The notes beneath the pieces were generated by a model, which saw nothing but the letters and a program-made list of their open reading frames with translations, was not told where the DNA came from and searched no databases. From positions 3,162,001 to 3,226,000 of the forward strand of contig JBLDXI010000017.1 in the NCBI GenBank assembly GCA_047495785.1: DNA of 64,000 nt, written 5' to 3'. A program made the position numbers and the translations under genes. This stretch comes from Lepidodermella squamata. Its lineage: Eukaryota > Animalia > Gastrotricha. This document shows, piece after piece, positions 33,501 through 52,272 of this stretch (within the stretch, counting starts at the first letter, position 1; the number at the start of each line of letters is the position of its first letter).

Positions 33501-36500
33501 TCTCGAAAAATCAGCCCGAAGAAAGTAATGGCGATGCAACGGAGGTGGTTAGTGTCGAAGCTAGCCGACCATGCCCGCCTTGTCGGCTGTATCAAGTGAA
33601 AATGCGGCGATCTGAGGGTCCTTTCCTCACACTTGTAGATCGCGCTTACGACCCATCGTGCTGCCCTCGCCATTACGGCTTTATCACAACGGATGGTGCT
33701 ATTCCGAAGGTTCCTAATTTCCCGGTCTTCACGCGCTACTGCGATCTAGATGTTACATTCGAATCTCTTGGCGAAGAGTTGATTTTCTCTGAGCAAGAGC
33801 TTGATCTCATTCGATTTTTCCATCGCTACGTCTTCCACACGATTCTGCGAATCGAAAAAGACGTTCTGTTCTTCCAGCCGGAAAAGTCGCCCATTCAAAT
33901 GTTCATTTTACCGTTAACGTACGACACGGCTGACGGGAAACCAGCTATTGACTGGGATTTCATCAAGTATATCAAACATTTTGTGCCGACTGTGCCAGGA
34001 GGTCTTGGCATTGTTCTTCGCAAGAGCGGCGAGCGTTTTCATTGGGATCAGAGCCAATTCGAAGACGCGGTGGTCTACCGCTCTTACTGCGGCTTTGTCG
34101 CCAACGAGTTGTACTACGTCGTGAATGTTCGGTATGACTACTCGCCGAAAACGCCGTTCCCGTCGGATCAATACGACGATTTCGTGTCGTATTACGAAAT
34201 CAAGTACAGGCTGATGGTGACCAACACAACTCAGCCGTTGCTTGACGTCGACCACACGACAGCTCATCTCAACATGATTTTGCCGCGTCGATGCAGCGGA
34301 AAGCTCGTTCCGACAACAGATGGTATTAATTTATCATTATTGTTATTAAATTGAGAAACATTTCAGATTACTTAACTGGGAATCGAAAATTTGAGGCTAA
34401 AAAATTGTGCCTCATTCTAGTTAAATTTGGACAAACCGCCTTTTCACTTTTCTTGCGCTCGTCTAAGAAGGCTGTAAAATTGGGAAAAATTGAAAAATTA
34501 CCCATACCATCTTCACCTATTTGTGAAATCAAGGTAAAATGTGATCTGCACCCCTTTGTGTTCTGAATATTTCTAAGTTTTTCCCGATTATTAATTTTGT
34601 CCAAATAAGATCCTTTACGGCATTAAATCGGTCATTTGAAACACGATTTTAATCGGCTTATACTGATATTTTTCAGAGGAAAATGCGCAACGTCTTTGGT
34701 TTGTTCCTGAGCTGTGTGGTATTCACCCGTTTCCAGCGTCCATGTGGCACAAAGCCGCTTGCTTGCCTACGATTTTCTACCGCTTGAACAGTCTTTTAGT
34801 CGCTAACGAAACTCTTCACATGGTCAACTCCGCCCTAGGCCTGCCTGATCTGGCTGAGCCTATTGATGGAGTAATACCTGCCAAGGAGAAATCGCTCATC
34901 GAATATTCGCAGCTTCGAACCCATCAAATGGCGGCGATTGCGCAACAAGCGGCCGGAATAACGCATTGGCTATTGACCGAGCCGTTGCTGCAAAGTTCAT
35001 CAACCAGCGCGCCCGGTTACGGCGTTTGCTCTGACTGTGTTGTCGCTGTTGAATCGGTCGTTTTCAAAACGCTGTGGCTTTACTTCAAGCGGGAAGAACA
35101 AGAAGAAGGTCAGGGCGAGCAGACGCTGCTGTCCTGCCTGATTTGCCACAATTTCTGCTACAGCGAATTCCACGCGATTGCGCACTTGCGTCACCGCCAT
35201 TCGTGGCTTTACACGCAACCGTGGTCGTTCCAACCCGACTCGCCCTGCCCGCTGTGCCAGGCAATGACCAAGGCCATGCAGCTATCACAGAGCCAGTCGC
35301 AACCGTGCGAGTTACCCATCTCCGCAATTCACTGCTCGTGCGGCGAGAAGGCAGGGTTGTGCAAGCACATCTCATCTCAATGGGACTCATTCCGCGCGAA
35401 AATCTCGTACTTATCAAAAGCCTGTGACCGGCCGCCTAACATGTGCGACATCTTGACAGCCCTCACCGCCTCGAACGCGAACGACATGTTCAGCTACGAG
35501 CGGCTTGAAACTGTGGGTGATTCTTTTCTGAAATTCACGGTAACCGCGTATTTGTACTGCTCGTGCCCTGGCGTTGAGGAGGGCAAGTTGACGTATATGC
35601 GGAGTCGGCAGGTCTGCAATTTGAACCTGTATTACCGGGGTCGCACCCGCGAGTTGGCCGAGCGCATGATTGTCTCGAAATTCGAGCCGACTGAGGCGTG
35701 GCTGCCGCCTGGTTACGTGTGCTTGAAAGGCAACGAATTGGATGAGAAAGTGTGTGACCCGAGCGCGATTTGGAAGGGCCCAGCCGAGGAGGCGAAACAA
35801 ACCAATGGCCACGCGAATGGCCATGAAAATGGGAATGGCAAGGCTGAGACGAACGGAAATGACACGAGTAAATTAGGCGATGACGAGGCCGAAGATGAGG
35901 AAGAGCAGAAGAATGAAGTGCCTGAGTTGCCGTCGACTCGCGGCCGAGGTCGTGGGCGGGGTGGTCGCCGTGGTCGGGGTAGAGGTCGCGGTGGCCGTGG
36001 TGGAGCTCAACAAGCTAAGCCAAAACCGCCGAAATCTGACGACAGTGACAGCGATGACGAAACAGTGGCTGTTAATTCGAAAACAAACGGAACTTCAGAG
36101 TTGACTACACTCCACACCCACCAAAGTCTATCGGACAAAAACATCGCCGATTGCGTTGAAGCGATTATTGCCGCGTATTTGGTAACAGCCGGGCATCAGG
36201 TGGCCCTGCAAGTCATCACCTGGTTCGGAATTAAGGTATTGCCCTTGATTCACTCTCTTGACTGCGGTCGCCCGGTCTCGGAGTGTGTAGACCGGTTACC
36301 TGATCCTGCCCCTCCGCTGTTGCCCGGGGCTGATCGCGAGGCGTTGATGAAGGTCTACTACAGCAATAATTTGGCGACCTTCGAATCGCTGATTGGCTAC
36401 CATTTCCGCGATAAAGCCTACCTGGTTCAAGCCTTCTGCCACGCTTCGTTTGATCTGTTCACGAAGCAGCGGTTAACAGATAGCTACCAACGTTTGGAGT

Positions 36501-37226
36501 TGCTAGGCGACGCTATTCTCGACTATTTGATCACGAGGCACATGTACGAACTGCATAGCCACTACTCACCCGGCGTGTTAACCGATTTGAGGTCGGCTCT
36601 CGTCAACAACAACATTTTCAGCTCGTTGGCGGTTCGGTGGAGTTTCCACCGATTCTTGCTCTACGCAAGCCCTGGGCTTTTCAATGTTGTCGTCGATTTC
36701 GTCAATCTCCACAAGCAGCACGGTTCTGATTTGGACCTAGAAAAGCTGGACGAGGTTAGTATTGACGTCTTTGATTTTTGTTTGAAAATAATATATTTTC
36801 TTACAGTTGGAAGAAAGTGGAGAAGCACTTGAATGTCCGAAAGTTCTCGGCGATATCTTTGAATCAGTCGCTGGGGCGATTTATCTCGACAGTGGACTCA
36901 GTCTTGAAACTGTTTGGCTCGTCTACTACCGCATGTTGAAACCTGTGATCGGTTTGTTTTTTCGCCTCTATCTCATTTTTTTAAATTTGAATAAATTAGA
37001 CGAATATACGGCGAATATTCCGAAATCGCCTGTCCGCGAGCTGCTCGAGAGGGAACCTGAAACTGCGCGTTTCCTTCGACCCGAGCGAACCATTGATGGT
37101 CGCGTGAAAGTTATCGTCAACGTAGTCGACAAGGGTCAATTCACGGGTGTTGGGCGTAACTTCCGCCTGGCCAAAAACGCAGCCGCTCGTCGGGCTCTTC
37201 GCCAAATCAAGTCTTCGAACAGCTAA
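30594..37226 (+). CDS. DCR-1: Endoribonuclease Dicer (degenerate helicase, DUF283, platform-PAZ, RNase IIIa, RNase IIIb, dsRBD); start uncertain (30594 or 30870)
   Basis: [14 protein letters not shown] (DUF283), [33 protein letters not shown], RNase IIIa [17 protein letters not shown], RNase IIIb [17 protein letters not shown], ds[23 protein letters not shown]. Confidence 0.96.
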
Positions 37227-38161: not shown

Positions 38162-40648
38162 ATGGCACAACTGTTGCGCAATGACTTGGGCCAACAGAAA
38201 CCGTGGAACAAACCACGGGGTATGTCAGAACAGATGGTACTTGATTGGGAAAGTTGTTGGAAGACCAATTAGCTGAGCTTTGTTGTTATCACGAAATTTT
38301 TCCCAACACCTCAATCTAGTCGAACCTTCTGAAACCGATCAATTAACTGAAGAAATGAAGATTCAGCACGATAAGAAGCTGTTGGAGATGCTGAGGATGC
38401 TGAGGAAGGGGGGTGAAAAACAAATCACGTAGTGGCTTATTCGGACTGAGGATCGCTGCTAAATACCTTGATCGAAAGACTCTCAAACTCATGGCAAATG
38501 GCCTAATATTCTGCCACTTAATGTACTGCGATACAACTCTCTCGCAGCTGGCACCGACCAAGCTCAGCAAACTACAACGTCGCCAAGACCAGGCCGTAAG
38601 AATCATTTGCCACGCTCCGATGAACGCGGACCCCGCACCGCTAAGACAAAAACTCGGATGGCTGGATCTTGACGGAAAACGAAAAGTTCACCTGGCAACA
38701 CTGATCTGGCGCTGCATTAATGGTGAGGCCCCGGTAGCCATAGCCAACTTCTTCAAACTTCGAACCGCACCAATGGCTTCTACCCGCAAACAAAACGCCC
38801 TCAAAGAACTCTCAAACATCCTAGAGGTGCCCAGGACTAAGTCAGCGATCATGGATCGGTGTTTGGCTCACCATGGATCGGTATTTTGGAACTCTCTCCC
38901 CGACCACATCCGCACATCCAAAACTGCCGACCAATGCAGAAACTTGGTTTACCGTCACCTGCTTACACAACAAAAAGAACTTACCTCAAATACCGCCGCC
39001 TGAAACCAGAAGACAAGAGCATCTGCATTTTATATTTTTATATTGATCCTGCTACAAACCAACATTCATCACAATTGTTTTCTTTGTTGAGCTATCTTCT
39101 TTTTTATACATATAAGTTACATGATGTTTTATAACTATCTAATCTTGTGTACAGTTTAAATCGAACCTAACTAATCCATTGTCTTTTTTTACAGCTGAGC
39201 TTTCCAACTTTTTCTAAAAACGGATGAATGGCTCATAAATAAATAAATAAATAAATGCTGATGAATGGCATTTGTAGCGACGTGACCTTCCAGGTTGAAG
39301 GGACAGATTTCCCCCTGCATCGCGTGATTCTCGCAGCACAATCGAGTGTCTTCAAAGCAATGCTGTTTTCAAGCGGCAGTTACTTCATCGAATCTGACTC
39401 GGAGCGGATCCGCCTACCCGACAAGAAAGTTGCATCTTTCCGCCGTTTCGTCGAGTACCTATACACAGGCTGCATCGATCTTAGCCTGTTGAAGCTGCCC
39501 GAACAGCTCGAACTTCTTGATTTAGCCAACGAGTACGACGTCAGAAGCCTATTCATGGCAGTCAGTGAGCATTTGATGGCTAATATCAACACGCCGACAG
39601 TTGCATTGGCTATTTTCGAACGAACTGCGCTGTATCATGAAGTTAGCCCTATGTTGTACGAGCGATGTCTCCGCTACATTAACGCATCAGCTGACCTGGT
39701 CATCCGAGAGGATAGCTTTTTGCGCTTACCTTTTCGACTACTATTTTATTTGTTTTCGCAGGACGAGTTTGCTGTCAGTGATGAACATCAGCTACTGAAG
39801 GTGATTTTCCAGTGGCGGCAAGCGAATTCTGTGACTGATGAGGAATTCAGTGAATTGCTTGGAACTGTGCGTCTCGGTCGCGATGAAATATTGAGCGATT
39901 ACTACGAACGAATCTTGAACTTCGAAAATTCAATTTCAAGTCGAATAATAGGTTTCGCACTTAAATATTAATTTATTAGCTGGAAACTTGTAAAAAAAAC
40001 CTGTATTTAGCACCCATCTGTAACATGGCAACCCTCGAAACAGCGTTGATATCAGCCGAGAGTCGATGCCAAAATGGCGACATGATTCTGCGCCCAGCAA
40101 ATGAAGGCGGATATGCCGATCTATCACTCGAGGACCCGAACTCATCAATTATTATTGAATTCAAACAGCCAATCTTGGTCACTTCCATGCGGCTGATTCT
40201 CGGTGCCAAGTCGATGAAATACAAAATATGCTTGATGTGCGGTTACGAGGCTGAAATTTGCAATTGTGTCTATTCGTACACGATTCACGTCAAATCTACC
40301 GCTGAAGATTCCGAGAATCTACTGATTGATTGCTCCGATAAGTTATGCCGAAGCTCTCAAGTTATTATATTCGAGCCGAGAAAGCTTCACTCGGGTATAT
40401 TTTGCAACTCCTTTTTGGCTTCAAATTTGTTATCTTTAATATTCCTTTTAGTTAAGATTCGTGCTATTCGGCATCCGAGCCGGTTTGAATTTTCGCCATC
40501 ATTCTATTTGACTCGTTTCGAATGCCCAGCAGTTGACGAAAATGGCGATGCGCTGCTGATCTTGGATGATCAATACATTGAGCATGAGATTAACTCTGAG
40601 TCATCGGCGAAACTCATCGAGTGTTTGGACTGGCCGAGTCATTGTTGA
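38162..40648 (+). CDS. BTB/BACK-domain protein (BTBD9-like), exon 2 interrupted by a LINE insertion; possibly a disrupted allele
   Basis: Exon 38162-38219 splices in phase to 38320. Removing the insert gives HDKKLLEMLRMLMNGICSDVTFQVEG..FPLHRVILAAQSSVFKAML (BTB), followed by BACK and C-terminal beta-sandwich-like exons. Confidence 0.8.
38404..39254 (+). mobile_element. 5'-truncated non-LTR retrotransposon (CR1/L2/Jockey-like ORF2 C-terminus) with (TAAA)n tail and 7-bp TSD ATGCTGA
   Basis: ORF 38413-39003 has HLMYC, KLQRRQDQAVRII, LGWLDL and FWNSLPDHIR, typical of the post-RT region. TAAA repeats at 39236-39254; ATGCTGA at 38397-38403 and 39255-39261. Confidence 0.9.
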
Positions 40649-41605: not shown

Positions 41606-42881
41606 ATGCTTCCGGCCGTGACGGACAAGCTGAGAAGCGTTCTGCTTTACGCGTTTCATTGCGTTCTGCCTCTTGTTGTATTGATTGCGGTAACACCTTT
41701 GTTTTTCGTCGGATGGGCCGGATGCCAAATTTTCAGCATTCCTGCGGCAACGCGGAAAATTTTTCTCTACCTTGACGTCTTCTTTTGGTCTTTCTATCAG
41801 CGACTGGTGTTATTTTTTGCTGAAAACTGGTCCGAAACTGAGATTTACCTGTATGGCGATGTTCCGTCAAACGGAGTTGAACAGCCTCGCCGCGAGAGCA
41901 TTGTATTCCTATGCAACCACCAAAGTTCGTTCGACTGGATTCTAGCCGATATTGTCGCTGTCAGGCACGGCTGCCTCGGAAATTTGCGTTATATTATAAA
42001 AAATTCGCTGCGATTCATTCCACTTTTTGGTTACTTCTTCAAGCTCCACGGCTGCGTCTACGTCAAACGAGGCGCTCATAATGAGGCGAACTACCGAAAT
42101 CAGCTGGTAGAATTATCGAAAAGAGGAACTGTAAGCTGACATAAAAGCATAGTTTTGCACAATTAGGCGATTAGGAAATTATAAGGCAACTGAAAGATTT
42201 CTGTTTTGACAGTACTGGTTGGTAATATTTCCTGAAGGTACCCGCTTCCGACAGCGCGATACGACTGAAGCTTTGGAAGTTAACAGAAGCTATGCGGAGA
42301 AGCATGGTTTACCGAAATTTGACTTGGTGTTGACTCCTAAGCATCGCGGCACATTACACGCCTTGCAAAGTCTTGACAATGTCGAAGCGATTTATGACGC
42401 AACGATAGCATACGAACCACCGGAGTGGAAACCGGATGGCAGCCAGCCGAAGATTCCCTCCATTGCAAGCTATTTGGCCGGAGCCACGCGCCGATTACAC
42501 ATTCATTTGGAACGCATTCCGATTGGCGAAGTTCCGAAAGATGAGCAACAGTTCACAACTTGGTTGTGCGATCGATTCAGAATAAAAAACGAGTAAGCTA
42601 CTACAATATAGTTTCACAGGAAAATAGAACTGTTTTCTTTCAGCATTCTAAGCAAATTCTACGCAAAAGGCGGAGCTCTTGTTGGCGAGGAGCTGCCAGC
42701 GCCGTCGAGACTTTCGCCCTACCGCGAGACGCTGCCGTACATCGCTTGGGCTGTTGGTGTGACTCTGCTATTGTTGGCAACGGAGTTTGGCCGGCCGATC
42801 TACTATTGCGCCGCGATGTTCGGCACACTCTTCACGTTAGGCTGGATGGCGGTGGTTCCGGATACTTTCTCCGCGGTGTGA
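41606..42881 (+). CDS. AGPAT5: 1-acyl-sn-glycerol-3-phosphate acyltransferase epsilon
   Basis: YQRLVLFFAEN..YLYGDVP, acyltransferase motif I NHQSSFDW, motif III FPEGTR, VLTPKHRG, and a C-terminal hydrophobic segment. Confidence 0.9.
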
Positions 42882-45800
42882 TAGCTAAACAGCCCAGTTA
42901 TCAAATTGACTTGACTTGAAAACGCACGATGTCATCTTACCTCAAGAGGTTGTGGCCGCTAATTTACCAAAAGCATCCGTTGTTAATTTTCTAAAAATGA
43001 AGTAATTATGATTTTTTGGAGAATATAGCTCACTCTGCTGATGCTGCACTTTGTAAATCGATATGGATTGTAAAAGAGGAAAAATTCCACAACATGCGTG
43101 TGGTCTATGTTTCGAGCTTCCTTTCTACTTATAATTGTTGAAATAAAATTTCACTAGCATTTTTCGTGTTATTGTGACAAGCGGCGAGTAGCAAATATGG
43201 CCTGATCTTCGCTTTGAATCACGCCACTTTCGAACCAGCTGTTCTAATGATGAGTGAGCACAAGTCTAATTTTGTGCACAAATTTTAACAAGTTTAAAAA
43301 TAATCACAATTTTGGCAAATTAAATCAATCGCCGACTTGTTTCATTTAGAGTTAGATAGCAAAGGATTCTGTCCAAAATGTTGTCAGCACTGGTAACGAG
43401 AAATAAAACAGGAAAACTGATGTGAATCATCTGTTGGTTTGCGTTTGATAGATGAGTGGATGCAATCAAAGCTAAGGGAATAGTTTCAATAATCCGGTCA
43501 ACTTTATGTAGGATATCCATAACTTGTACGAGTGGTCCTCTTTAATTTTTCCTTTCTTGACTCAGCTTCGACCTAGCTCAGATATTTGCGGCAGCACGAG
43601 CTTATGTCCAAACTTATTTACACCTCATATCAGAGGCGGCTGCCACCCCCATTTCGCAGCTTTAACGATAAAGCGCGAGTTTACCTGCGATGGAGTATAG
43701 ATATCGGTCATCGCAATATTTAATTTAGCAATAATAAATGCAACAAATAGCACGGCATTATCCGCCCATTTGTGCGCAAAACAACGAGATGGGCGATAAA
43801 TAAATTTAAATTGTTCATCCATCCATTTACACCACGCGCACGTGTTTTTTACCTTGTGTTCATTATCGCGCAGACCTGGTAAAAGCAGGTGTATCGACCC
43901 GAAGTTCGGCAAGAGAAGCTGGGGTGCCGCACTTTCGTCGCCCAAAGAGGTGTTTTTATATTATTTTATCAGCCGCTTGCGCGCAGCACGAAGCAGCTTT
44001 TACCTACGCGCCCGATGAGCTGCTTTTATATACCCCACCGATAAATGTGGGCCGGCGCACCGTCATTGTCTTCACGCCGCCATGGCAAGGATATTTTAGG
44101 CGGCGTTAAATATTTTGCAAGGTAGGATATTCATTCGAGTTTTCAGTCGGCGCTACACTGCAATAATGACGTAGAGCTGCTATCACACTTTTACATTTTC
44201 GCACTTTTATTATTATCGTCGAGGCTGAAATTCACCGATCGCCCCATCATTAATCCAAAAATTACATACTAAAAGCCCAGCAGTTATAACCACTCAATTT
44301 ACTTCAGGGAATTTTGCGATTATTTCTCGACAAATTAGTTTACACCCGCAGGATATCTGCGCGACGAATTAATTTGTTGTAACAAAAAACGAAATAGCTT
44401 AGCGATATTATTATTACTACTGCTATTATTAATTTTTATTACCTGTGAAACGACGTAATGCGATATGATGTATAGTGAGTTTATTTGCGGCGTTATATCG
44501 CACAGATGATTATACTGCAGAACCGCGCGCGCGCGCATGTCTCGCTTTGCATGGCTTGCTTATTTTTGCGATAATATAGGTATAACGGCGCGACAACCCA
44601 GAGCAGCGCCGCCGGGGAGATGCAAATTAATGTTGCGTATAGGAAAGTTGAAAATAAATCGAATGTAAATCTGCGCTCGTGGCTCTGCAGCTGCTGCCGC
44701 GGGAGTGGAGCAGGCGCCAGGGTGGATTCGCAATAACAAGGTATACGGCCCCCGCCTACTATTTGTTGTCGTTAAATTACTTTATTATACTTCTCTCATT
44801 ATTTTGCTGTTGGTTTATTAGATATTATACCCACCTGAAGCAACGAAAAATCTGCGGCATAGCTCGCGGGCATTATCGGAGTCCGTCGCGCGCATCGTAT
44901 CGGCGGCTCACATTTTTCTTTGCAGTTCGTCGTTATTTTTCTTTACACTTGTATTCTTTTACTACATCATCAGCATCGTGAAATAGTATCGGGCGCGATA
45001 ATAGAAATAATAACGCCTTTTCGTCACAGACGGCGGCGGGCGAGGTGTAAGCTGTGCGCGCGCGGCAGTGAACGAACAATAAAGCAGCAGCAGCAACAGC
45101 GGCGAACATGACACACCTGCAAATTTATGCATCAGCCTACTATACCCGAGTTCTTTCGCTCTGGGCTCGCGGCGATGAAGATATCAGATAGCAATAATCG
45201 TTGCTTTAGGTAACTGAAATAATATAGTAATAATATTTCGCCATCGCACCGCTGTCAACAACAACGGCAATTGCGTATCAAATTTATACACTTTTATTGC
45301 CTCTCCCCTATATACCTGTGCTAACTAGCATTAACTCAGCTTTAATCAACCCGATAGCTACGATACAAATCGCCCGCATGCGTTGATGCTCATTATAACG
45401 TATGCGTGACTAATGACTCAGATCGCCGTCTCCCCACTGGGGTTGTTCTTTCGATTTGCGCTCTAAAAAATAACCCAACCTTACAGTTATATCGCAGCGC
45501 ACTTGAGCGCCGGTCGGAAATAAGATCAATTTAGTTCGCATGCCTGTTTTTTTTTCCTATCGCATGGCCCGCGACACGGCAGCATGGTTCAAGGGCGTTA
45601 TAATTTTTTTCGCTCGGCCAGGGCATTACGCGTGGGTGCTTCACTGCGCGACAGGTTTCCTTTCATCGCAATATATATAATTCAAATTCTCAAGTACATT
45701 TTCGCTACCGGCCTTCTGATTATACCGCGCCGATGTATATAAATCTAAAGTTTTATTCACTGTAATGACAATATAACCCGCCCCCATGGCCTCATGACGC

Positions 45801-48072
45801 TATTTAACCCGCTGATTCAACGTGTCGTATTCTCGGGCTTTGAAATAGAAACCGCTTATTTCGGTTAAACACGTCGGCTTCAATCCTGTAATAAACCAGT
45901 GGCTGGGTTATTTCCCTCTCGGACGAGATGACCCCGTTCGCCTAAAAAGATTTGTTATTATCAATCTCGCCGTGTGTGAATGTGTGCCAATTTATTTTTT
46001 GTTGTTTATCAAATCCGCCCGTGAAGCGCTTCGAGACAACTGCTGTTGTTTGCATTAATTTTTTTTACGATCTCGAAGTGTAGATAAACCAGGCGATTAA
46101 CTGTGTATGGCATATTATAATATTTTTTTGTTTGCGAATTTTTAGCCATCAGACGTGTGTGCGGCGTGGCCGCTAAACCATCCAACCCGACCAGGCAGAT
46201 GTTCGCCGTTGTTTATTGCACATTAATTTTATTCTTATAATACCTATATCGTCGGTCGATATATATTACCAGAGAGAATATCTTGCTGTACCGCGGTCAC
46301 ACTCACTGCAAAAACATGTGTTTTGCGACGCCACGGCCGCCCCCAATGTCGAACCAGCCCGCCGCCCTGCTCCCGCTCGCTACTAGTCATAATTCATAAT
46401 TAAAAAATAAAACCAAAAACTAGGCGCGAAGCGGAAGCTCAACGGGAATACAGAGCTCGAGTTATTTCTCAGCCGCGCCGCGCCGACAGGAGCTTATTAG
46501 TCGGGTCTCAGCTGCGAAAAAAATATACAGCTGGGCACTGTCATTATCCAACGCCTGCTAATGTGTATAATTTGCTCATTTGCGGCGCCGCTGCTGCTGC
46601 TGCTCTGCTCGACGTCGTCGTCGGTGGGGATTTTTAATATTTATTTGGTAGGGCTGCGGATATTAATATGGCTTTGTTGTTATTAAAGTGCAGACGACTG
46701 ACTATACGGTGTGGGTTATATTTTTATGATTAATATATCGACGACGACGGCGGCGGGCGAGAGCAGGGAGATAGCAGCACGTGTGCCTGGCTACCGCGCC
46801 CGCGTTGCAAGAAGGCGCGCGCGCGCGTCGGCCCTCGACGGCCGTCGCAAACAAGACAATCGTCATCGTCATCATCATCGATGGCTGCTAGAATAATATA
46901 GCGGCGCGTGTGTTTGTCGGGGGACGGCAGCAGCAGCCGCCGCGCCGATAACTGCGCCCGCCTTGTTTATTGTCGCCATCTCGTTGAATATTATTCTACA
47001 CTACGTTATTGCCATCCCTCGTTCTCTCCCTCGGTGACGCGGGCGTGTATATTTTGTCGAAATAAATCGATATATCGCCTGCCTTCATTTACGACCGGTC
47101 GCCAGACCGGGTCGCTCGCCGGCGCCGTTGTGTTGTCTGTGCTGCTAGCGCGGCGGATCGTATATCAGTATCGCACAGCCCTCATCGTGTGCTACATTCA
47201 AACGAGCGAACGAGCGAACGAACGAACGAGATTGCGACCCTTTATTTTGCGTTTAATAATCATCGTTGCTGGCGTTGTAGCGGGCGGGGTCTTTATACGA
47301 CACAAGTCTAAATGGTGCATCACCGACTATTATCTCTAGCGTCGCCGTTCTCTTCTCCTGCTTGCTCACTTGCTCGCGAGCGCACACGATCTAAAAAGCA
47401 GCAGCAGCAGCAGCCTAATAATAATGAAAATATTATTTTAAAAGCCCGACGACAAAGACCTTCTTCCTTCCCGCCGAGTGCGATTTGCGCATTTAATGCA
47501 CTGCTCTCTTCATCTTTCGACTCGAAGATAAAACGTATATATTGCATTTATTTCACCGCCATCCTTTCCATTATTATTGTCGCCACATCACCGCGCCGTC
47601 GCCGCCGTCGTCATTTTCGCTTTATACTCCGCTGCTGCTCTTCAGCGAATTTTGATGCGCGCTGTAAACAAAATCAACCTTCCTACCTGCATTGCGCTCG
47701 AAAATTAATTGCTAAGTCTCAAATTCCCTCGGTTATCTTCGCATCCCTCTGCGCCTTATCTTGACATTATTTCGTCGAGCCGCGCGGTTATACACCAATG
47801 CGCCTCTGCTAAAAATATCGGGCATTAGCGCAGCAGTGATAACCATTTCTATTCTCCCGTTCTATTTTGGTAGTAAATAAGGACCCACCCACTTCTCATA
47901 ACCCAGGTTCGTTTGATAATAATAATAATATAACGCGCACATAATTTTATAGGCCAAAAGATGGCCGGATGCATATGCAAAAAAAGTTATCTGAAAAAGT
48001 CGATATAACTGCGCTGTTTTTCCACATGCGATAGGAATTTACCAAGTTCGTGAAGATTCGAACGCAGTTGGC

Positions 48073-51000
48073 ATGATGTCTTCAGTTTTCCCGTCGTCTG
48101 CGGCGACGAACATTGGCCCATCCAACGGAAATTCCAGCGGAACTGACAACACAAACGCCAGGTTCGAGGAAGAACTTTACGTGGCATATCTTCAAGCCCG
48201 TTCGCGGCGCATCGCAGTATCCTCAGCCGGTCTTTTGGAATGGGCGCAGGAAATCGCCGTTTCCGAGGGTTATTACGACAGAGAAGAGGCTCGAACTCTT
48301 CTGACCCCAGAATGGCTCGATGGTTGGTGCCAGCGTAACCAGGTGAATGACGTCGATGCTGAATACGACGAAGAGGCGCCTGATAACGACGACGAAGACG
48401 ATGACGCCGAAGACGAGGAAATTGAGGAAGCACCTGATGATTCATCGCTTGTTCTCTACCCACCGCCTATCGACAGCCCGCTAACTCCATCGCCGCCACC
48501 CCAGAAAAAAGGCGTGACGAAGAAGTTGGCAGTCACTGAAGCCGCTGCGAATGGCGATATAGAGAGCGTAGTAACGACTTATCTATCAACCCCACAGCCG
48601 AGATCGCGGCTTTTCGAACATATGCTAGCTGAAAGTGCTGCGAAATTACTGACAAAATTCATGTCAGAGTCGCTGCAAATGGCTGATGACGTTCGGCCCG
48701 AGCACTTGACGCCTGAGGAACTGAATCGAACTTTGATCCAGTTTTTCCGGCAACTTCATAAACCTGATTCTCCTGATGAGACCTACTCGGTTAAGGTCTT
48801 GCATGGCATTCTTGAAGGCCTGTCCCGCTACCTACGCGGTTGTGGTTATTCATGCGACCTTGCGTATGAGTCGAATTTCAGCGAGGCGAGAGCTGCGTTT
48901 GGCGAGAAACTCATGAAGGCTTTCGAGTCAGAGTCGAAGCAGAAGCATATAGCTTTGAAAGTCAGTAAGGGCGAGACGTCGGGAGGCGAAGAAGTTGACG
49001 ACGATGAGGTGAGCAAAAAGATGCAACAGGATCACAGATTACGGCCGTTGGGCTCAGACGAAATTGCCCCCGACGCCGCAATGGCTTCGTTCAACAAAAA
49101 CACGCAAAAGGTCATGACCTGGGCGGCGAAGAACGTAGTTGGGTTCGGCCGAGAACGGCTGGGCTTGACGCAATTCGTGCGCGTTGAAGAGATGCCGCCG
49201 GAACTGCTCAACGTTGTGCTGACGCGATTCTTCTGTGAGGCGAGGAAGGCCGATGGCACTGAGTTTGGCTGGAACTCGTTCAAATCTGTGTTTTCTAACC
49301 TCGAAGCGTATCTCAGGGTTCACCGCTACCCCCTCGGCCTACACGACCCGGTTTTCAGGATGGCCAAGCAGACCCTGTTCAACGTGCTGAGACCGGGTGG
49401 TAGTGCTGGCGGCTCGACCGCTGCAGCCGCCAATATTGCAGCTGCTAATAACCAATCTTCAAATTCGGCAAATCACCATGTATCGACTGGAGGTACGCCT
49501 GGTAACAACACGCCGAGTCGTAGCGGGTCGAGTGTGAATGCGGGCGGAAATGCGAATGAAACATCGGCGCGGCCCTTGTACCACCGGCCGATTGAGATAA
49601 ACTCGGCGGAGGAGAACATTCTGTGGACACAGGGCGCGTTCGGTTGGCACTCGCCCCAAGCTATCAACACTACGCTATACTACTACATGCGGCATATCTA
49701 CGGGGTGCGGAGTGGCGAGTCGCATCGGAGGATCAACTTTGGCGACCTGAGGACAATGAAGTCGGAAGATGGCCGGGAGGAGTTTCTAGTGTACACGAAA
49801 GCGGCGAATGGCATGGACATTTCGCGGCTGAGGCGCATGTGGGCGACTCGCGACGACCGGTGCATCGTTCGCGTTTACAAGGTGATGGTCGCGAAACGGC
49901 CGCCGGAGACGCGGAAAGCTGACGCGCCGCTGTATTTGCAACCGAAGCGCCAGCGGCACTACGCCCTCGACTCGAATGCAGCGATCGACGCGGCCTCGCT
50001 GCCCGGCACCGACGAGGTCGCCACAGATTGCTGGTTCACGACAGCGCCGCTCGGTAAAAACGCGCTCGCCACCTTAATGCGCGAGGCCTATCAAAGCTGC
50101 GGCTTAGATTCGAGTCGATTCAATGCCAACAACCCGCCTAGTCAAGTTGTTGGTAGTAGCAGTGCTGCTCGATTCGCTAGCCAGCATGATTCTCAGGCCT
50201 ATGATGACATGGATAATTTGTTGGCGGATAGTAATAATAACAGCAATTTAGGCGATGATGGCGGGTCATCGCGCAGTTCTTCGTCGTTTTCGCACCACGC
50301 CCCGACTCCGGTTAATAGCCGGCTATCTAATAACAACAATCGCCTGCCTTCGAATGGGCTTTCGTCTAGCAACGATAACAACGCTCGCCGGTCGTTTATT
50401 CCTGCTTCTAGTCTTGTATCGCCTCAAAATCAAGCTATCGATCTTGCCACTTCGAACAAGCGCAAACGAGGTAAAGAAATAATAGAAAATACATTACTTG
50501 ACGTTACAAATTGTAAAGTTATCGCAGATACTATGGGCCGTTTCGCAGGAAGTTCGGGAGGATTCGGTGCCCAGCAACATGAGGCCTTATCGTTGTGTAC
50601 GAACGAGAAATCGCGGCCTATCAATGCCAGCCAGCCTGCATCTCGTGGCGTGTCAAACTCATCGCTGCCTAACAGAAATGGAGGCAGTGACTTCTCGCTC
50701 AAATCGAAAATCCCAAAATTATCGGTCGAGGTGAGTATGGCTAGCCATGGAAATATATAATAAACTGAAATAAAAATTCCACCTTAAAAAATATTACCAA
50801 GAAATTCCTAACCATTTTCATTTTTTTTGCAGGCTAGCGTTAAATCTGAGCCGGGTAATAAGGTACGTCCTACTCAGCAACCATCTGCATCGCCAAGCTC
50901 CTCGGATTGCGCGCCAACTGACGCGAGTGGGTTGTCGGCGTCTGCTTTCGGCAACGGTCTTGGCAATATGAGCATTTCGATGCAGCCGAAAACAGCCGCC

Positions 51001-51108
51001 GATATGGCTGACGTTCTGAGCTTTCTCAACCAATTCCTAAACTCGTCTTCATCAAATAGTAGCATCTACAAATGCAGCATAAACGTTACTGTCAACATAA
51101 GCAAATGA
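48073..51108 (+). CDS. Domesticated transposon-derived nuclear protein: CENP-B/Tc5-type HTH + 2x Crypton core-binding repeats + DUF3504 (ZMYM/QRICH1/KIAA1958-like)
   Basis: FEEELYVAYLQARSR..LLEWAQEIA..EWLDGWCQRN (HTH); two LN..L..FF...K.D...Y/F..S......L..YL repeats; EENILW..G..SPQAI..YGVRSGESH..FGD, RCIV..YK....KRP, WFTTAPLGKNAL. One intron, 50731-50832. Confidence 0.85.
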
Positions 51109-52272
51109 TGAACAAACATGCTATTTGAATCTTGTTGTTGCTATATTGATAATTTTATTGTTGGATTTCTTATATATATTTTTGCCGGAATTTTTTATGT
51201 AAAAATTGCAACTTTCGATGCAAAATTTCCTTTCGGCCGTAAAATTCTGCCGCTATGTCAAGACGCCACACATATGCTACCTGCAAGCCCATTTTTTTTA
51301 AATGAGCGGAATCTAGTTGAAAATAATTCTCGAACTGTGATCGTTTTTTCGTCGTATGCGTTTTATCTATAGCCGTTCGTGATGGTCATCCTACTTAATA
51401 TTGTGCACTAGTCGAACAAAATCAAATTTTGAGACAGCCAATGACATTTTTTGTTGTCAGCTCGCCATTTACATATATTTTGATATCTGAAATAACGCGT
51501 TAGCAGTTATATCTCAAAGCTTCATTCCATCCTAAAAATCGTGTGTATCAAACATTAGCTATAAAAAAAACGCCGAAATTTGCCAATTTTGCGCTTGAAA
51601 TGTGATAAACATTGTTGATCCTCTCCTTCTTGAAAGTGAACAAACTTCGACCATTTTCTTATATATGCTACACCGGCAAAGTCCAAATGTTATTTACATT
51701 TATCGGCCTGGCTATAATCTGATTCCTCTCCAACGTTAAACATTGCGCAATTATACTACACATAGCCTCAGTTTTCGTCGTCAATTTTTGATAATATTTG
51801 TCGGTTTTGCGTTATTATTTTTTGTCACATTCGCACATTTCCGTCAGACCATCAGTGTTGTAATTTTTGAACAAATAATCTTGTCTGAATTAATGCAATC
51901 AGAGTTTATCTGTCCATAAAAAGAATATTTATTGTATAATATAGCAAATAATAATTATAAAATTCTATGTATAATTGAAAAATATTGATCCTATAAAACA
52001 GCAAAGCCAAGAGCGGAACAAATTTTGTGAACAAATGAAGACAATAAAAGTGAATATTATCACGACATGCTTTGGGTTTTTCAAGTGCCAGTCCCAGTAA
52101 GAATATGTGGTCGCTCGAGTCCATGACCTGCTAAAACCCGTGCAGGTAATTTTGTCACACACACTAATAAATTGGATTAACCTCAAGCGAAGGCGTTGAA
52201 CCATATTAACAGCGTTTGCACTGGTGCAAGTTTTTATTCTCCGGACTTCATGATTACTGTTTCGCTTTAAGG

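Follow-up and report, generated by a model that had tools for sequence, protein, structure and literature searches.

In animals, catalytically dead recombinases of Crypton transposons have been recruited several times, as in WOC/ZMYM, QRICH1, KIAA1958 and KCTD1, with a different partner domain each time. WOC and ZMYM2-4 represent a bilaterian Crypton domestication (Kojima & Jurka 2011, PMC3212892). A Crypton fused with a Mariner-type transposon, MarCry-1_FO, is known from Fusarium (PMC3212892). According to Bianchi et al. (2025; cited in PMC13538652), the co-regulator Zincore is formed by QRICH1 and SEPHS1 and attaches to zinc-finger transcription factors on DNA, and the PDB entry 9hjt is titled 'Zincore (SEPHS1:QRICH1) binding to ZFP91 on DNA'. 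In this study, we analysed a stretch of 64,000 nucleotides from the gastrotrich Lepidodermella squamata (assembly GCA_047495785.1, contig JBLDXI010000017.1, positions 3,162,001-3,226,000 of the forward strand), hereafter called the window, to which all coordinates without a contig name refer. The plus-strand gene at 48073-51108 was found, from transcript-like contigs and the sequence, to have three exons and to encode a protein of 961 amino acids. With a probability of about 0.75, we consider it to be a lineage-restricted host gene made from a dead Crypton recombinase that has gained a helix-turn-helix (HTH) fold of the CENP-B type.

The protein matches only one place in the genome assembly (121 Mb in 151 contigs), as the first-pass annotation of this DNA had expected. 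HMMER was run exhaustively against 1.84 billion representatives and yielded one full-length relative, P0001, which shows 69% identity over residues 2-743. The next match stood at 3.7e-26, and among the matches listed from the 524 relatives obtained at E<=0.001, all but P0001 cover only residues ~300-450 and ~500-690 of the query. Word-index protein searches with the whole protein and with the DUF3504 region likewise returned P0001 only and no named relatives, and two scans of metagenome contigs, one with a single protein and mostly low-complexity patterns and the other with an alignment, yielded no further orthologue. The gene appears to be lineage-restricted and is known so far from one genome and one metagenomic relative. 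P0001 is located on two metagenome contigs (L002 and L003), on which Dicer, a BTB gene and an acyltransferase gene lie upstream. The same gene order was identified by tblastn in the window (36125-37223, 39255-40396 and 41636-42872, followed by the Crypton-derived gene), so that the synteny proposed as a check on the first-pass annotation is indeed present.

The gene is expressed as spliced RNA. Contigs from two public runs, X1 and X2, were placed on 47900-51400. X1 gives no coverage upstream of about 48134 and properly starts only near 48208, and X2 covers the upstream DNA and reads through both introns. Because X1 skips introns and starts near the gene and X2 spans the introns and the upstream region, the two runs look like RNA and genomic DNA, respectively. 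Before intron correction, the locus appears as an open reading frame (ORF) of 895 amino acids at 48073-50760 (+), where local G+C content peaks at 54%. The start codon is common to the gene and its orthologue, and homology to the orthologue begins at 48064. A spliced C-terminal tail had been predicted and is real: two transcript-like contigs skip exactly the second intron, whose donor is G/GTGAGT at 50730/50731 and whose acceptor is CAG/ at 50832/50833. This intron is found only in the window's species, and the orthologue frame is open through to the stop. The assignment of all domains to one exon held in part; exon 1 encodes all of the folded domains, but an additional 48-nt intron lies inside the exon as it had been drawn. 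This first intron preserves the reading frame, and its position is kept in the orthologue, which has GT...AG at the same RKR/G point (~64 nt, L002:12253-12316).

Synonymous sites are saturated between the gene and its orthologue (pS >= 0.75), and hence the suggested dN/dS comparison gave no ratio; within-sample variants were used instead. In the runs, 34 of the 40 variant sites are third-position synonymous changes (binomial P 2e-11), and the six replacement variants all fall within low-complexity linkers. The gene is therefore under purifying selection. Amino acid identity to the orthologue is 75% in the HTH-fold domain, 66% and 89% in the first and second core-binding repeats (CB1 and CB2), 79% in DUF3504 and 37-50% in the linkers. 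No terminal direct or inverted repeats bracketing the gene were found, in line with the lack of transposon termini noted in the first pass. Because it is present in a single copy, has a syntenic orthologue and introns, is under purifying selection and lacks transposon termini, this locus is a host gene rather than a transposon. In run X2, alternative contigs over 48714-50418 have about half the depth, differ at many synonymous positions and lack 3 nt at 49489 in the low-complexity linker; they look like two diverged haplotypes or strains.

Most of the protein, from about residue 170 to its end, is best read as derived from one CryptonA-type tyrosine-recombinase reading frame. A core-binding profile hidden Markov model (HMM) built only from Crypton-like relatives matches the gene at two places (Table 1) and also matches the orthologue twice, and CB1 and CB2 match each other with E 2e-8, so that the two core-binding repeats claimed earlier are both present. 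The CB1 stretch is matched in addition by the Pfam 'QRICH1 domain' (PF25561), a core-binding-type module that precedes DUF3504 in Crypton-like proteins. DUF3504 itself (PF12012) was identified in Pfam at residues 512-670 with E 9e-18 and 65.3 bits, against a cut-off of 29.7 bits, and scores 62.9 bits in the orthologue. In an alignment with 26 Crypton-type relatives, the first catalytic arginine (Arg-I) is kept as R546 in GVRSGESHR (49708-49710) and the beta-hairpin lysine as K576 (49798-49800), whereas the NHSxRK box (box-II His and Arg) and the GHK...Y box (third His and Tyr nucleophile) of the relatives have no counterpart in the query or P0001. This agrees with the earlier description of a DUF3504 region that keeps the first Arg but has neither HxxR nor Tyr. 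Shortly beyond the ...CGLD helix, recombinase homology can no longer be recognised, and both orthologues become low-complexity. Because the catalytic half that carries NHSxRK and GHK...Y in the relatives has decayed, the protein is predicted to be unable to cut or rejoin DNA, as the first-pass annotation had proposed in calling it catalytically dead. The KRKR sequence at 50458-50469, at the exon 1/2 junction, may be a nuclear localisation signal.

An AlphaFold model of residues 165-700 contains three well-folded modules with disordered linkers between them. The best solved match of this model in Foldseek was QRICH1 in Zincore (9hjt_H, E 4e-6), followed by many Cre structures. A profile of the family matches QRICH1 with E 7.6e-29 over residues 521-764 of 776. 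Because the match extends to residue 764, QRICH1 ends about where the recognisable homology of the gene ends.

Beyond the decayed half, the protein ends in a short motif that is shared with many Crypton-type proteins. The motif found at the ends of these proteins has the form F.G..h..C/G.FNh.h, and the end of exon 3, ...YKCSINVTVNISK, fits this form. A loose pattern of the motif matched the C-terminal 45-residue tails of 27 of the 149 relatives (P0002, P0011, P0013, P0015, P0027, P0030 and 21 others), versus 14 matches in 69,102 body residues. The orthologue has almost the same final 45 residues, with the last 9 unchanged, whereas the sequence just before them is poorly conserved. Because this terminal motif of the family is conserved behind the decayed catalytic half, everything from CB1 up to the stop codon is best taken as a single former Crypton frame. 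We found no description of the motif in the literature, and animal Cryptons were reported to have no C-terminal domain (Kojima and Jurka, PMC3212892). A complex prediction between the CB2-DUF3504 core and the exon 3 tail (score 0.01, mark 0.34) provides no evidence either way on docking.

The N-terminal region had been annotated as a CENP-B/Tc5-like HTH followed by an acidic tract, and both are present. For residues 31-91, the top Pfam family, though below the cut-off, is HTH_Tnp_Tc5 (PF03221; E 0.027, 14.9 bits), and the same family independently ranks first for the orthologue (E 0.008, 16.6 bits), with matches covering profile positions 2-62 of 66. Of the 30 nearest Atlas clusters by language-model features, 23 belong to the PF03221 set. 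An hhalign comparison with six Tc5 HTHs of resident pogo-like copies gave P 3.4e-4 over 55 columns and a probability of 38%, with only two sequences on the query side. The structural model of the domain (pLDDT 88), built from a two-sequence alignment, has four helices. In VIA-align, residues 72-131 of CENP-B (1hlv_A, the second HTH) ranked first of 48,161 solved chains, with Z 8.3, an rmsd of 2.0 A over 60 residues and 25% identity, followed by a runner-up with Z 6.2. In the Atlas shape search, all 10 rows were PF03221 clusters (among them Jerky, CENP-B and Tigger-derived; TM 0.58-0.76). The W-L...R signature of the last helix is also retained. We accept the second HTH of the CENP-B/pogo type as the fold and family of this domain, as judged from the model and the family matches. 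A pogo origin may be inferred from them, but a host-gene donor is also possible. At least 25 pogo-type Tc5 HTH matches are present in the same genome (L014-L016 at C31:191300, C42:933961 and C42:1895450 of G000, and 22 others), several of them in identical 289-aa open frames, which suggests that pogo-like elements have recently been active there.

Table 1. Exons, introns, domains and other segments of the Crypton-derived gene (window coordinates; aa, amino acid residues)
Feature	Position	Strand	Description
Exon 1	48073..50470	+	799 codons + 1 base; 3' end from the GT..AG joint in a transcript-like contig
Intron 1	50471..50518	+	48 nt, phase 1, GT..AG; skipped in one X1 contig, present in DNA run X2
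Exon 2	50519..50730	+	low-complexity coding
Intron 2	50731..50832	+	102 nt, phase 0, GT..AG; skipped in two X1 contigs (depth 43), retained in X2
Exon 3	50833..51108	+	91 codons + stop
CENP-B/Tc5-type HTH-fold domain	48163..48345	+	aa 31-91, four helices, acidic (net -6)
Acidic tract	48358..48441	+	aa 96-123, net -19
Core-binding repeat 1 (CB1)	48634..48918	+	aa 188-282, PF25561-type; Crypton-only HMM E 8e-16; helical bundle in model
Core-binding repeat 2 (CB2)	49087..49377	+	aa 339-435; HMM E 9e-18; 89% identical in orthologue
Low-complexity linker	49417..49578	+	aa 449-502; 37% identity to orthologue; disordered in model
DUF3504	49606..50112	+	N-terminal half of tyrosine-recombinase catalytic domain
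Decayed C-terminal catalytic half	50113..50470	+	low-complexity; without HxxR, His, Tyr; ends in conserved KRKR
Conserved C-terminal block	50962..51105	+	ends in Crypton-type terminal motif ...YKCSINVTVNISK

None of the other proteins or papers that we examined combines this HTH with a dead Crypton. The N-terminal block is missing from all 149 other DUF3504 relatives, PF03221 was detected in none of the 18 longer relatives that were scanned in Pfam, and none of the Atlas clusters near the whole protein joins PF03221 with PF12012. A two-sequence HMM of the N-terminal domain matched none of 150 relatives, and neither did a six-sequence Tc5 HMM, the latter being too weak even for the query (E 0.4), so that this negative result counts little. 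No paper that pairs DUF3504 with a Tc5 HTH was found in the searchable literature. Three features of the gene have not previously been described together, namely the Tc5-type HTH fold as partner, the duplicated core-binding module and the C-terminal motif kept despite the loss of the catalytic half. An otherwise unrelated match, P0014 (706 aa), has the same order of two core-binding modules and DUF3504; therefore, module duplication is not unique to the Crypton-derived gene. Several other relatives have unusual layouts. P0002 (1450 aa) contains two tandem Crypton-type units in a single open frame. P0081 (707 aa) has a PRDM-type PR domain with a core-binding module and DUF3504, and P0068 (902 aa) has DUF3504 with TINF2_N and five C2H2 fingers; these two could be other Crypton-host fusions or gene-call artefacts.

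The same genome also contains other DUF3504 loci. A two-exon locus at C20:1514041-1514558 of G000 (L004/L005) gives much stronger matches (98.7 and 81 bits) and is possibly a WOC-like gene. Near-identical copies of 337-352 aa with an intact HxxR...Y are present at C30:480915-481358 and C36:370016-370459 (L006/L007), and a dispersed DUF3504 family comprises about 14 loci (26 bits, 246-aa open frame). Therefore, Crypton-type elements reside in this genome now or did so recently. In a quick maximum-likelihood tree of 62 core-binding plus catalytic modules, the gene and its orthologue share a very long stem (2.81). They are nested in a clade with an SH-aLRT of 96 that consists mostly of intact HxxR...H...Y proteins, where no immediate sister was resolved. 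The other supported clade (99) takes in five further DUF3504 loci from this genome. The simplest reading of the sequence relationships would be an independent, lineage-restricted domestication.

The evidence for the HTH bears on how many transposons contributed to the gene. To our knowledge, the Tc5-type HTH fold is nearly confined to pogo-type transposases and genes derived from them, which counts for a strict double domestication, in which the HTH would have been captured from an adjacent or inserted copy of a pogo/Tigger-type transposase. This scenario is compatible with a dead Crypton host gene that gained a CENP-B-type fold, and it had been proposed in the first-pass annotation. The Crypton part of that proposal and the CENP-B/Tc5 fold were borne out, whereas direct capture from a pogo element is a possibility. 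The scenario is favoured by the uniform PF03221 membership of the Atlas shape matches, several of which also carry DDE_1, by the many potential donors in the genome, some of them in identical copies, by the absence of the N-terminal block from the 149 Crypton-type relatives and of PF03221 from the 18 longer ones scanned, and by the fact that animal Cryptons have been described without an accessory domain (PMC3212892). However, neither the first HTH (PF04218, CENP-B_N/psq type) nor DDE_1 (PF03184) gave a Pfam match at E<=10, only about 30 residues precede the HTH, no trace of flanking terminal inverted repeats (TIRs) is present at the locus, and similarity to the resident pogo HTHs is weak by both hhalign and a local HMM. 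Moreover, a host-gene donor that already carried such a domain would look identical. We consider the probability of this capture to be somewhat below one half. If, in contrast, the N-terminal four-helix unit were a generic or host winged-helix/HTH-like domain whose likeness to CENP-B is convergent or untraceably old, only the Crypton would have been domesticated. The sub-threshold PF03221 scores, the failure of Foldseek to match the N-terminal model in the PDB, the note of VIA-align itself that Z values of ~8 are common for small helical domains, and the acidic nature of the domain, unlike the DNA-binding Tc5 HTHs, all fit this explanation. We regard it as unlikely, because four partly independent lines (Pfam in two orthologues, hhalign, language-model features and structure) give the same family, and because CENP-B leads the solved chains by 2 Z units and the W-L...R signature is kept.

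Descent from one of the known domesticated genes would be another explanation, the gene then being a plain orthologue of QRICH1, WOC/ZMYM, KIAA1958 or KCTD1 that has diverged in this lineage. QRICH1 is the best solved match, recombinase homology stops after the same helix in both proteins, and the nearest named relative is labelled 'KIAA1958 homolog'. This label, however, was assigned automatically to a mollusc protein that is catalytically intact, and the gene has no MYM zinc fingers, CARD, Gln-rich region or BTB domain in Pfam at E<=10. A phmmer search with the protein alone misses QRICH1 at E<=10, the most similar proteins besides P0001 include intact Crypton-type proteins, which also make up most of the tree clade, and the separate, much stronger DUF3504 locus on contig C20 also speaks against such orthology. 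Orthology to QRICH1 or WOC was judged unlikely on the grounds that the partner domains differ and pairwise similarity is lacking, and the whole class of such orthologies appears quite improbable to us. The presence of other DUF3504/tyrosine-recombinase loci in the genome, including the family of about 14, would fit a Crypton transposon copy, active or recently immobilised, rather than a host gene. The locus has neither an intact R-H-R-Y tetrad nor multiple copies, and its syntenic orthologue shows ~68% identity with saturated synonymous sites. The transposon reading was rejected in view of the single copy, synteny, two spliceosomal introns, dead active site, lack of termini and purifying selection, and we give it almost no credence.

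Several points weigh against a lineage-restricted, dead Crypton host gene with a gained CENP-B-type fold. Only one orthologue was found, and it lies on metagenome contigs. Both PF03221 scores are below the 22.2-bit gathering cut-off. Of the segments submitted to Foldseek, as had been suggested, the Crypton part matched QRICH1 and Cre, but the N-terminal model had no match to the PDB at E<=0.001; the fold call thus rests on VIA-align and the Atlas shape search, with a model from a two-sequence alignment. The tree placement involves a very long branch and a tree that includes no named WOC, ZMYM, QRICH1 or KIAA1958 sequences. The analogy to Zincore applies at the level of fold and family only, and QRICH1 is not detected with the query alone. 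Finally, the RNA label of X1 in its record is only a guess, though the intron-skipping contigs argue for RNA.

The history of the gene may be reconstructed as follows. The core-binding module of one CryptonA-type frame would have been duplicated, the C-terminal catalytic half would have decayed into a disordered low-complexity stretch while the terminal motif was retained, and the N-terminus would have acquired the second-HTH fold of CENP-B/pogo transposases with a strongly acidic tract behind it. We hold this account of the identity and history of the gene to be highly probable. The charge distribution bears on its function. The net charge of the HTH-fold domain is -6 in the window and -7 in the orthologue, versus -1 to +19 in six pogo HTHs, and that of the recognition-type helix is -2 and -1, respectively, versus +1 to +7. 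Because both the HTH and its recognition-type helix are acidic, canonical reading of DNA by this domain appears doubtful. CB2 (+5) and the DUF3504 module (+4) are positively charged, as is typical of their relatives. The earlier suggestion of a chromatin or DNA-binding regulator thus stands as far as a host gene is concerned, but DNA binding by the HTH has become less likely. The protein may instead act as a non-catalytic nuclear scaffold or co-regulator, like QRICH1 in Zincore and WOC/ZMYM. The basic CB2 and DUF3504 modules would then grip DNA, a partner sitting on DNA, or both. The HTH and the tract behind it, both acidic, would make contacts with proteins or have an autoinhibitory effect, rather than recognise particular DNA sequences. 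This mechanism, which draws on the analogy to known co-regulators, is tentative, and we would not put it at even odds.

A further step, which we consider possible but slightly less likely again, is that DNA-handling modules of two unrelated transposon superfamilies, namely the second HTH of a pogo-type DDE transposase and the core-binding and catalytic parts of a Crypton recombinase, came together in a single host protein. Each would then have lost its original activity, the HTH by turning acidic and the recombinase by deletion of its active site, with the terminal motif remaining near-invariant. If so, the motif would have a non-catalytic role, such as subunit assembly, that is older than the domestication and is used by active Cryptons too. 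A host gene from two transposon superfamilies, as would result if the HTH came from a pogo element, would be a rare kind of exaptation.

Upstream of the gene, the 5.2 kb between the acyltransferase gene and the Crypton-derived gene (42873-48072) contain no conserved coding matches. Microsatellite-like GCA/GCC runs are present in this interval at 45084-45105, 46583-46604, 46927-46948 and 47395-47416. Two ORFs, of 122 and 225 aa, occupy the corresponding place on the orthologue contig, and nothing in the window matches them.

Among known systems, QRICH1, a subunit of Zincore (PDB 9hjt/9hju) and a non-catalytic nuclear co-regulator, is the closest solved analogue. Similar to the gene, it has a PF25561 core-binding module followed by a DUF3504 that ends after the same helix, without HxxR and Tyr. 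It differs in having an N-terminal CARD, a Gln-rich region, a single core-binding module and no Tc5 HTH, and in ending right after DUF3504. WOC and ZMYM2-4 resemble the gene in that they are conserved, expressed host genes with a dead DUF3504 (Tyr and the second Arg lost) and an added nucleic-acid-binding domain. In these proteins, however, the added domain consists of MYM-type zinc-finger arrays, and they are ancient and widespread, whereas the gene has a Tc5-type HTH fold and two core-binding modules and comes from one genome and one metagenomic relative.

The transposon-encoded proteins and their other derivatives show a complementary pattern. CryptonA-type recombinases (P0004, P0015, P0027 and P0030) share with the gene the core-binding module, the Arg-I/Lys half and the C-terminal motif, at 25-36% identity. 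These are proteins of 350-550 aa that keep NHSxRK and GHK...Y and have one core-binding module and no HTH; in the gene, by comparison, the catalytic half is gone, the core-binding module has been duplicated, and an N-terminal domain and introns have been added. The pogo-derived CENP-B, Jerky and TIGD proteins share the second-HTH fold, with PF03221 as the top family, but they contain two HTHs, which are basic and bind DNA, together with a DDE_1-derived domain. The gene has one acidic HTH, no DDE remnant and a PF03221 match below the cut-off. MarCry-1_FO is a precedent for the physical fusion of a Crypton with a transposon of the Tc1/mariner group. MarCry-1_FO, however, is mobile: it occurs in multiple copies, has TIRs and TA duplications and depends on its DDE transposase for movement, whereas the gene is an immobile host gene that is present once and has neither of the two catalytic activities. 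The gene adds a separate case to the dead Crypton recombinases recruited as animal regulators, and its retained motif, together with a truncation point like that of QRICH1, suggests which parts of a Crypton are useful without catalysis.

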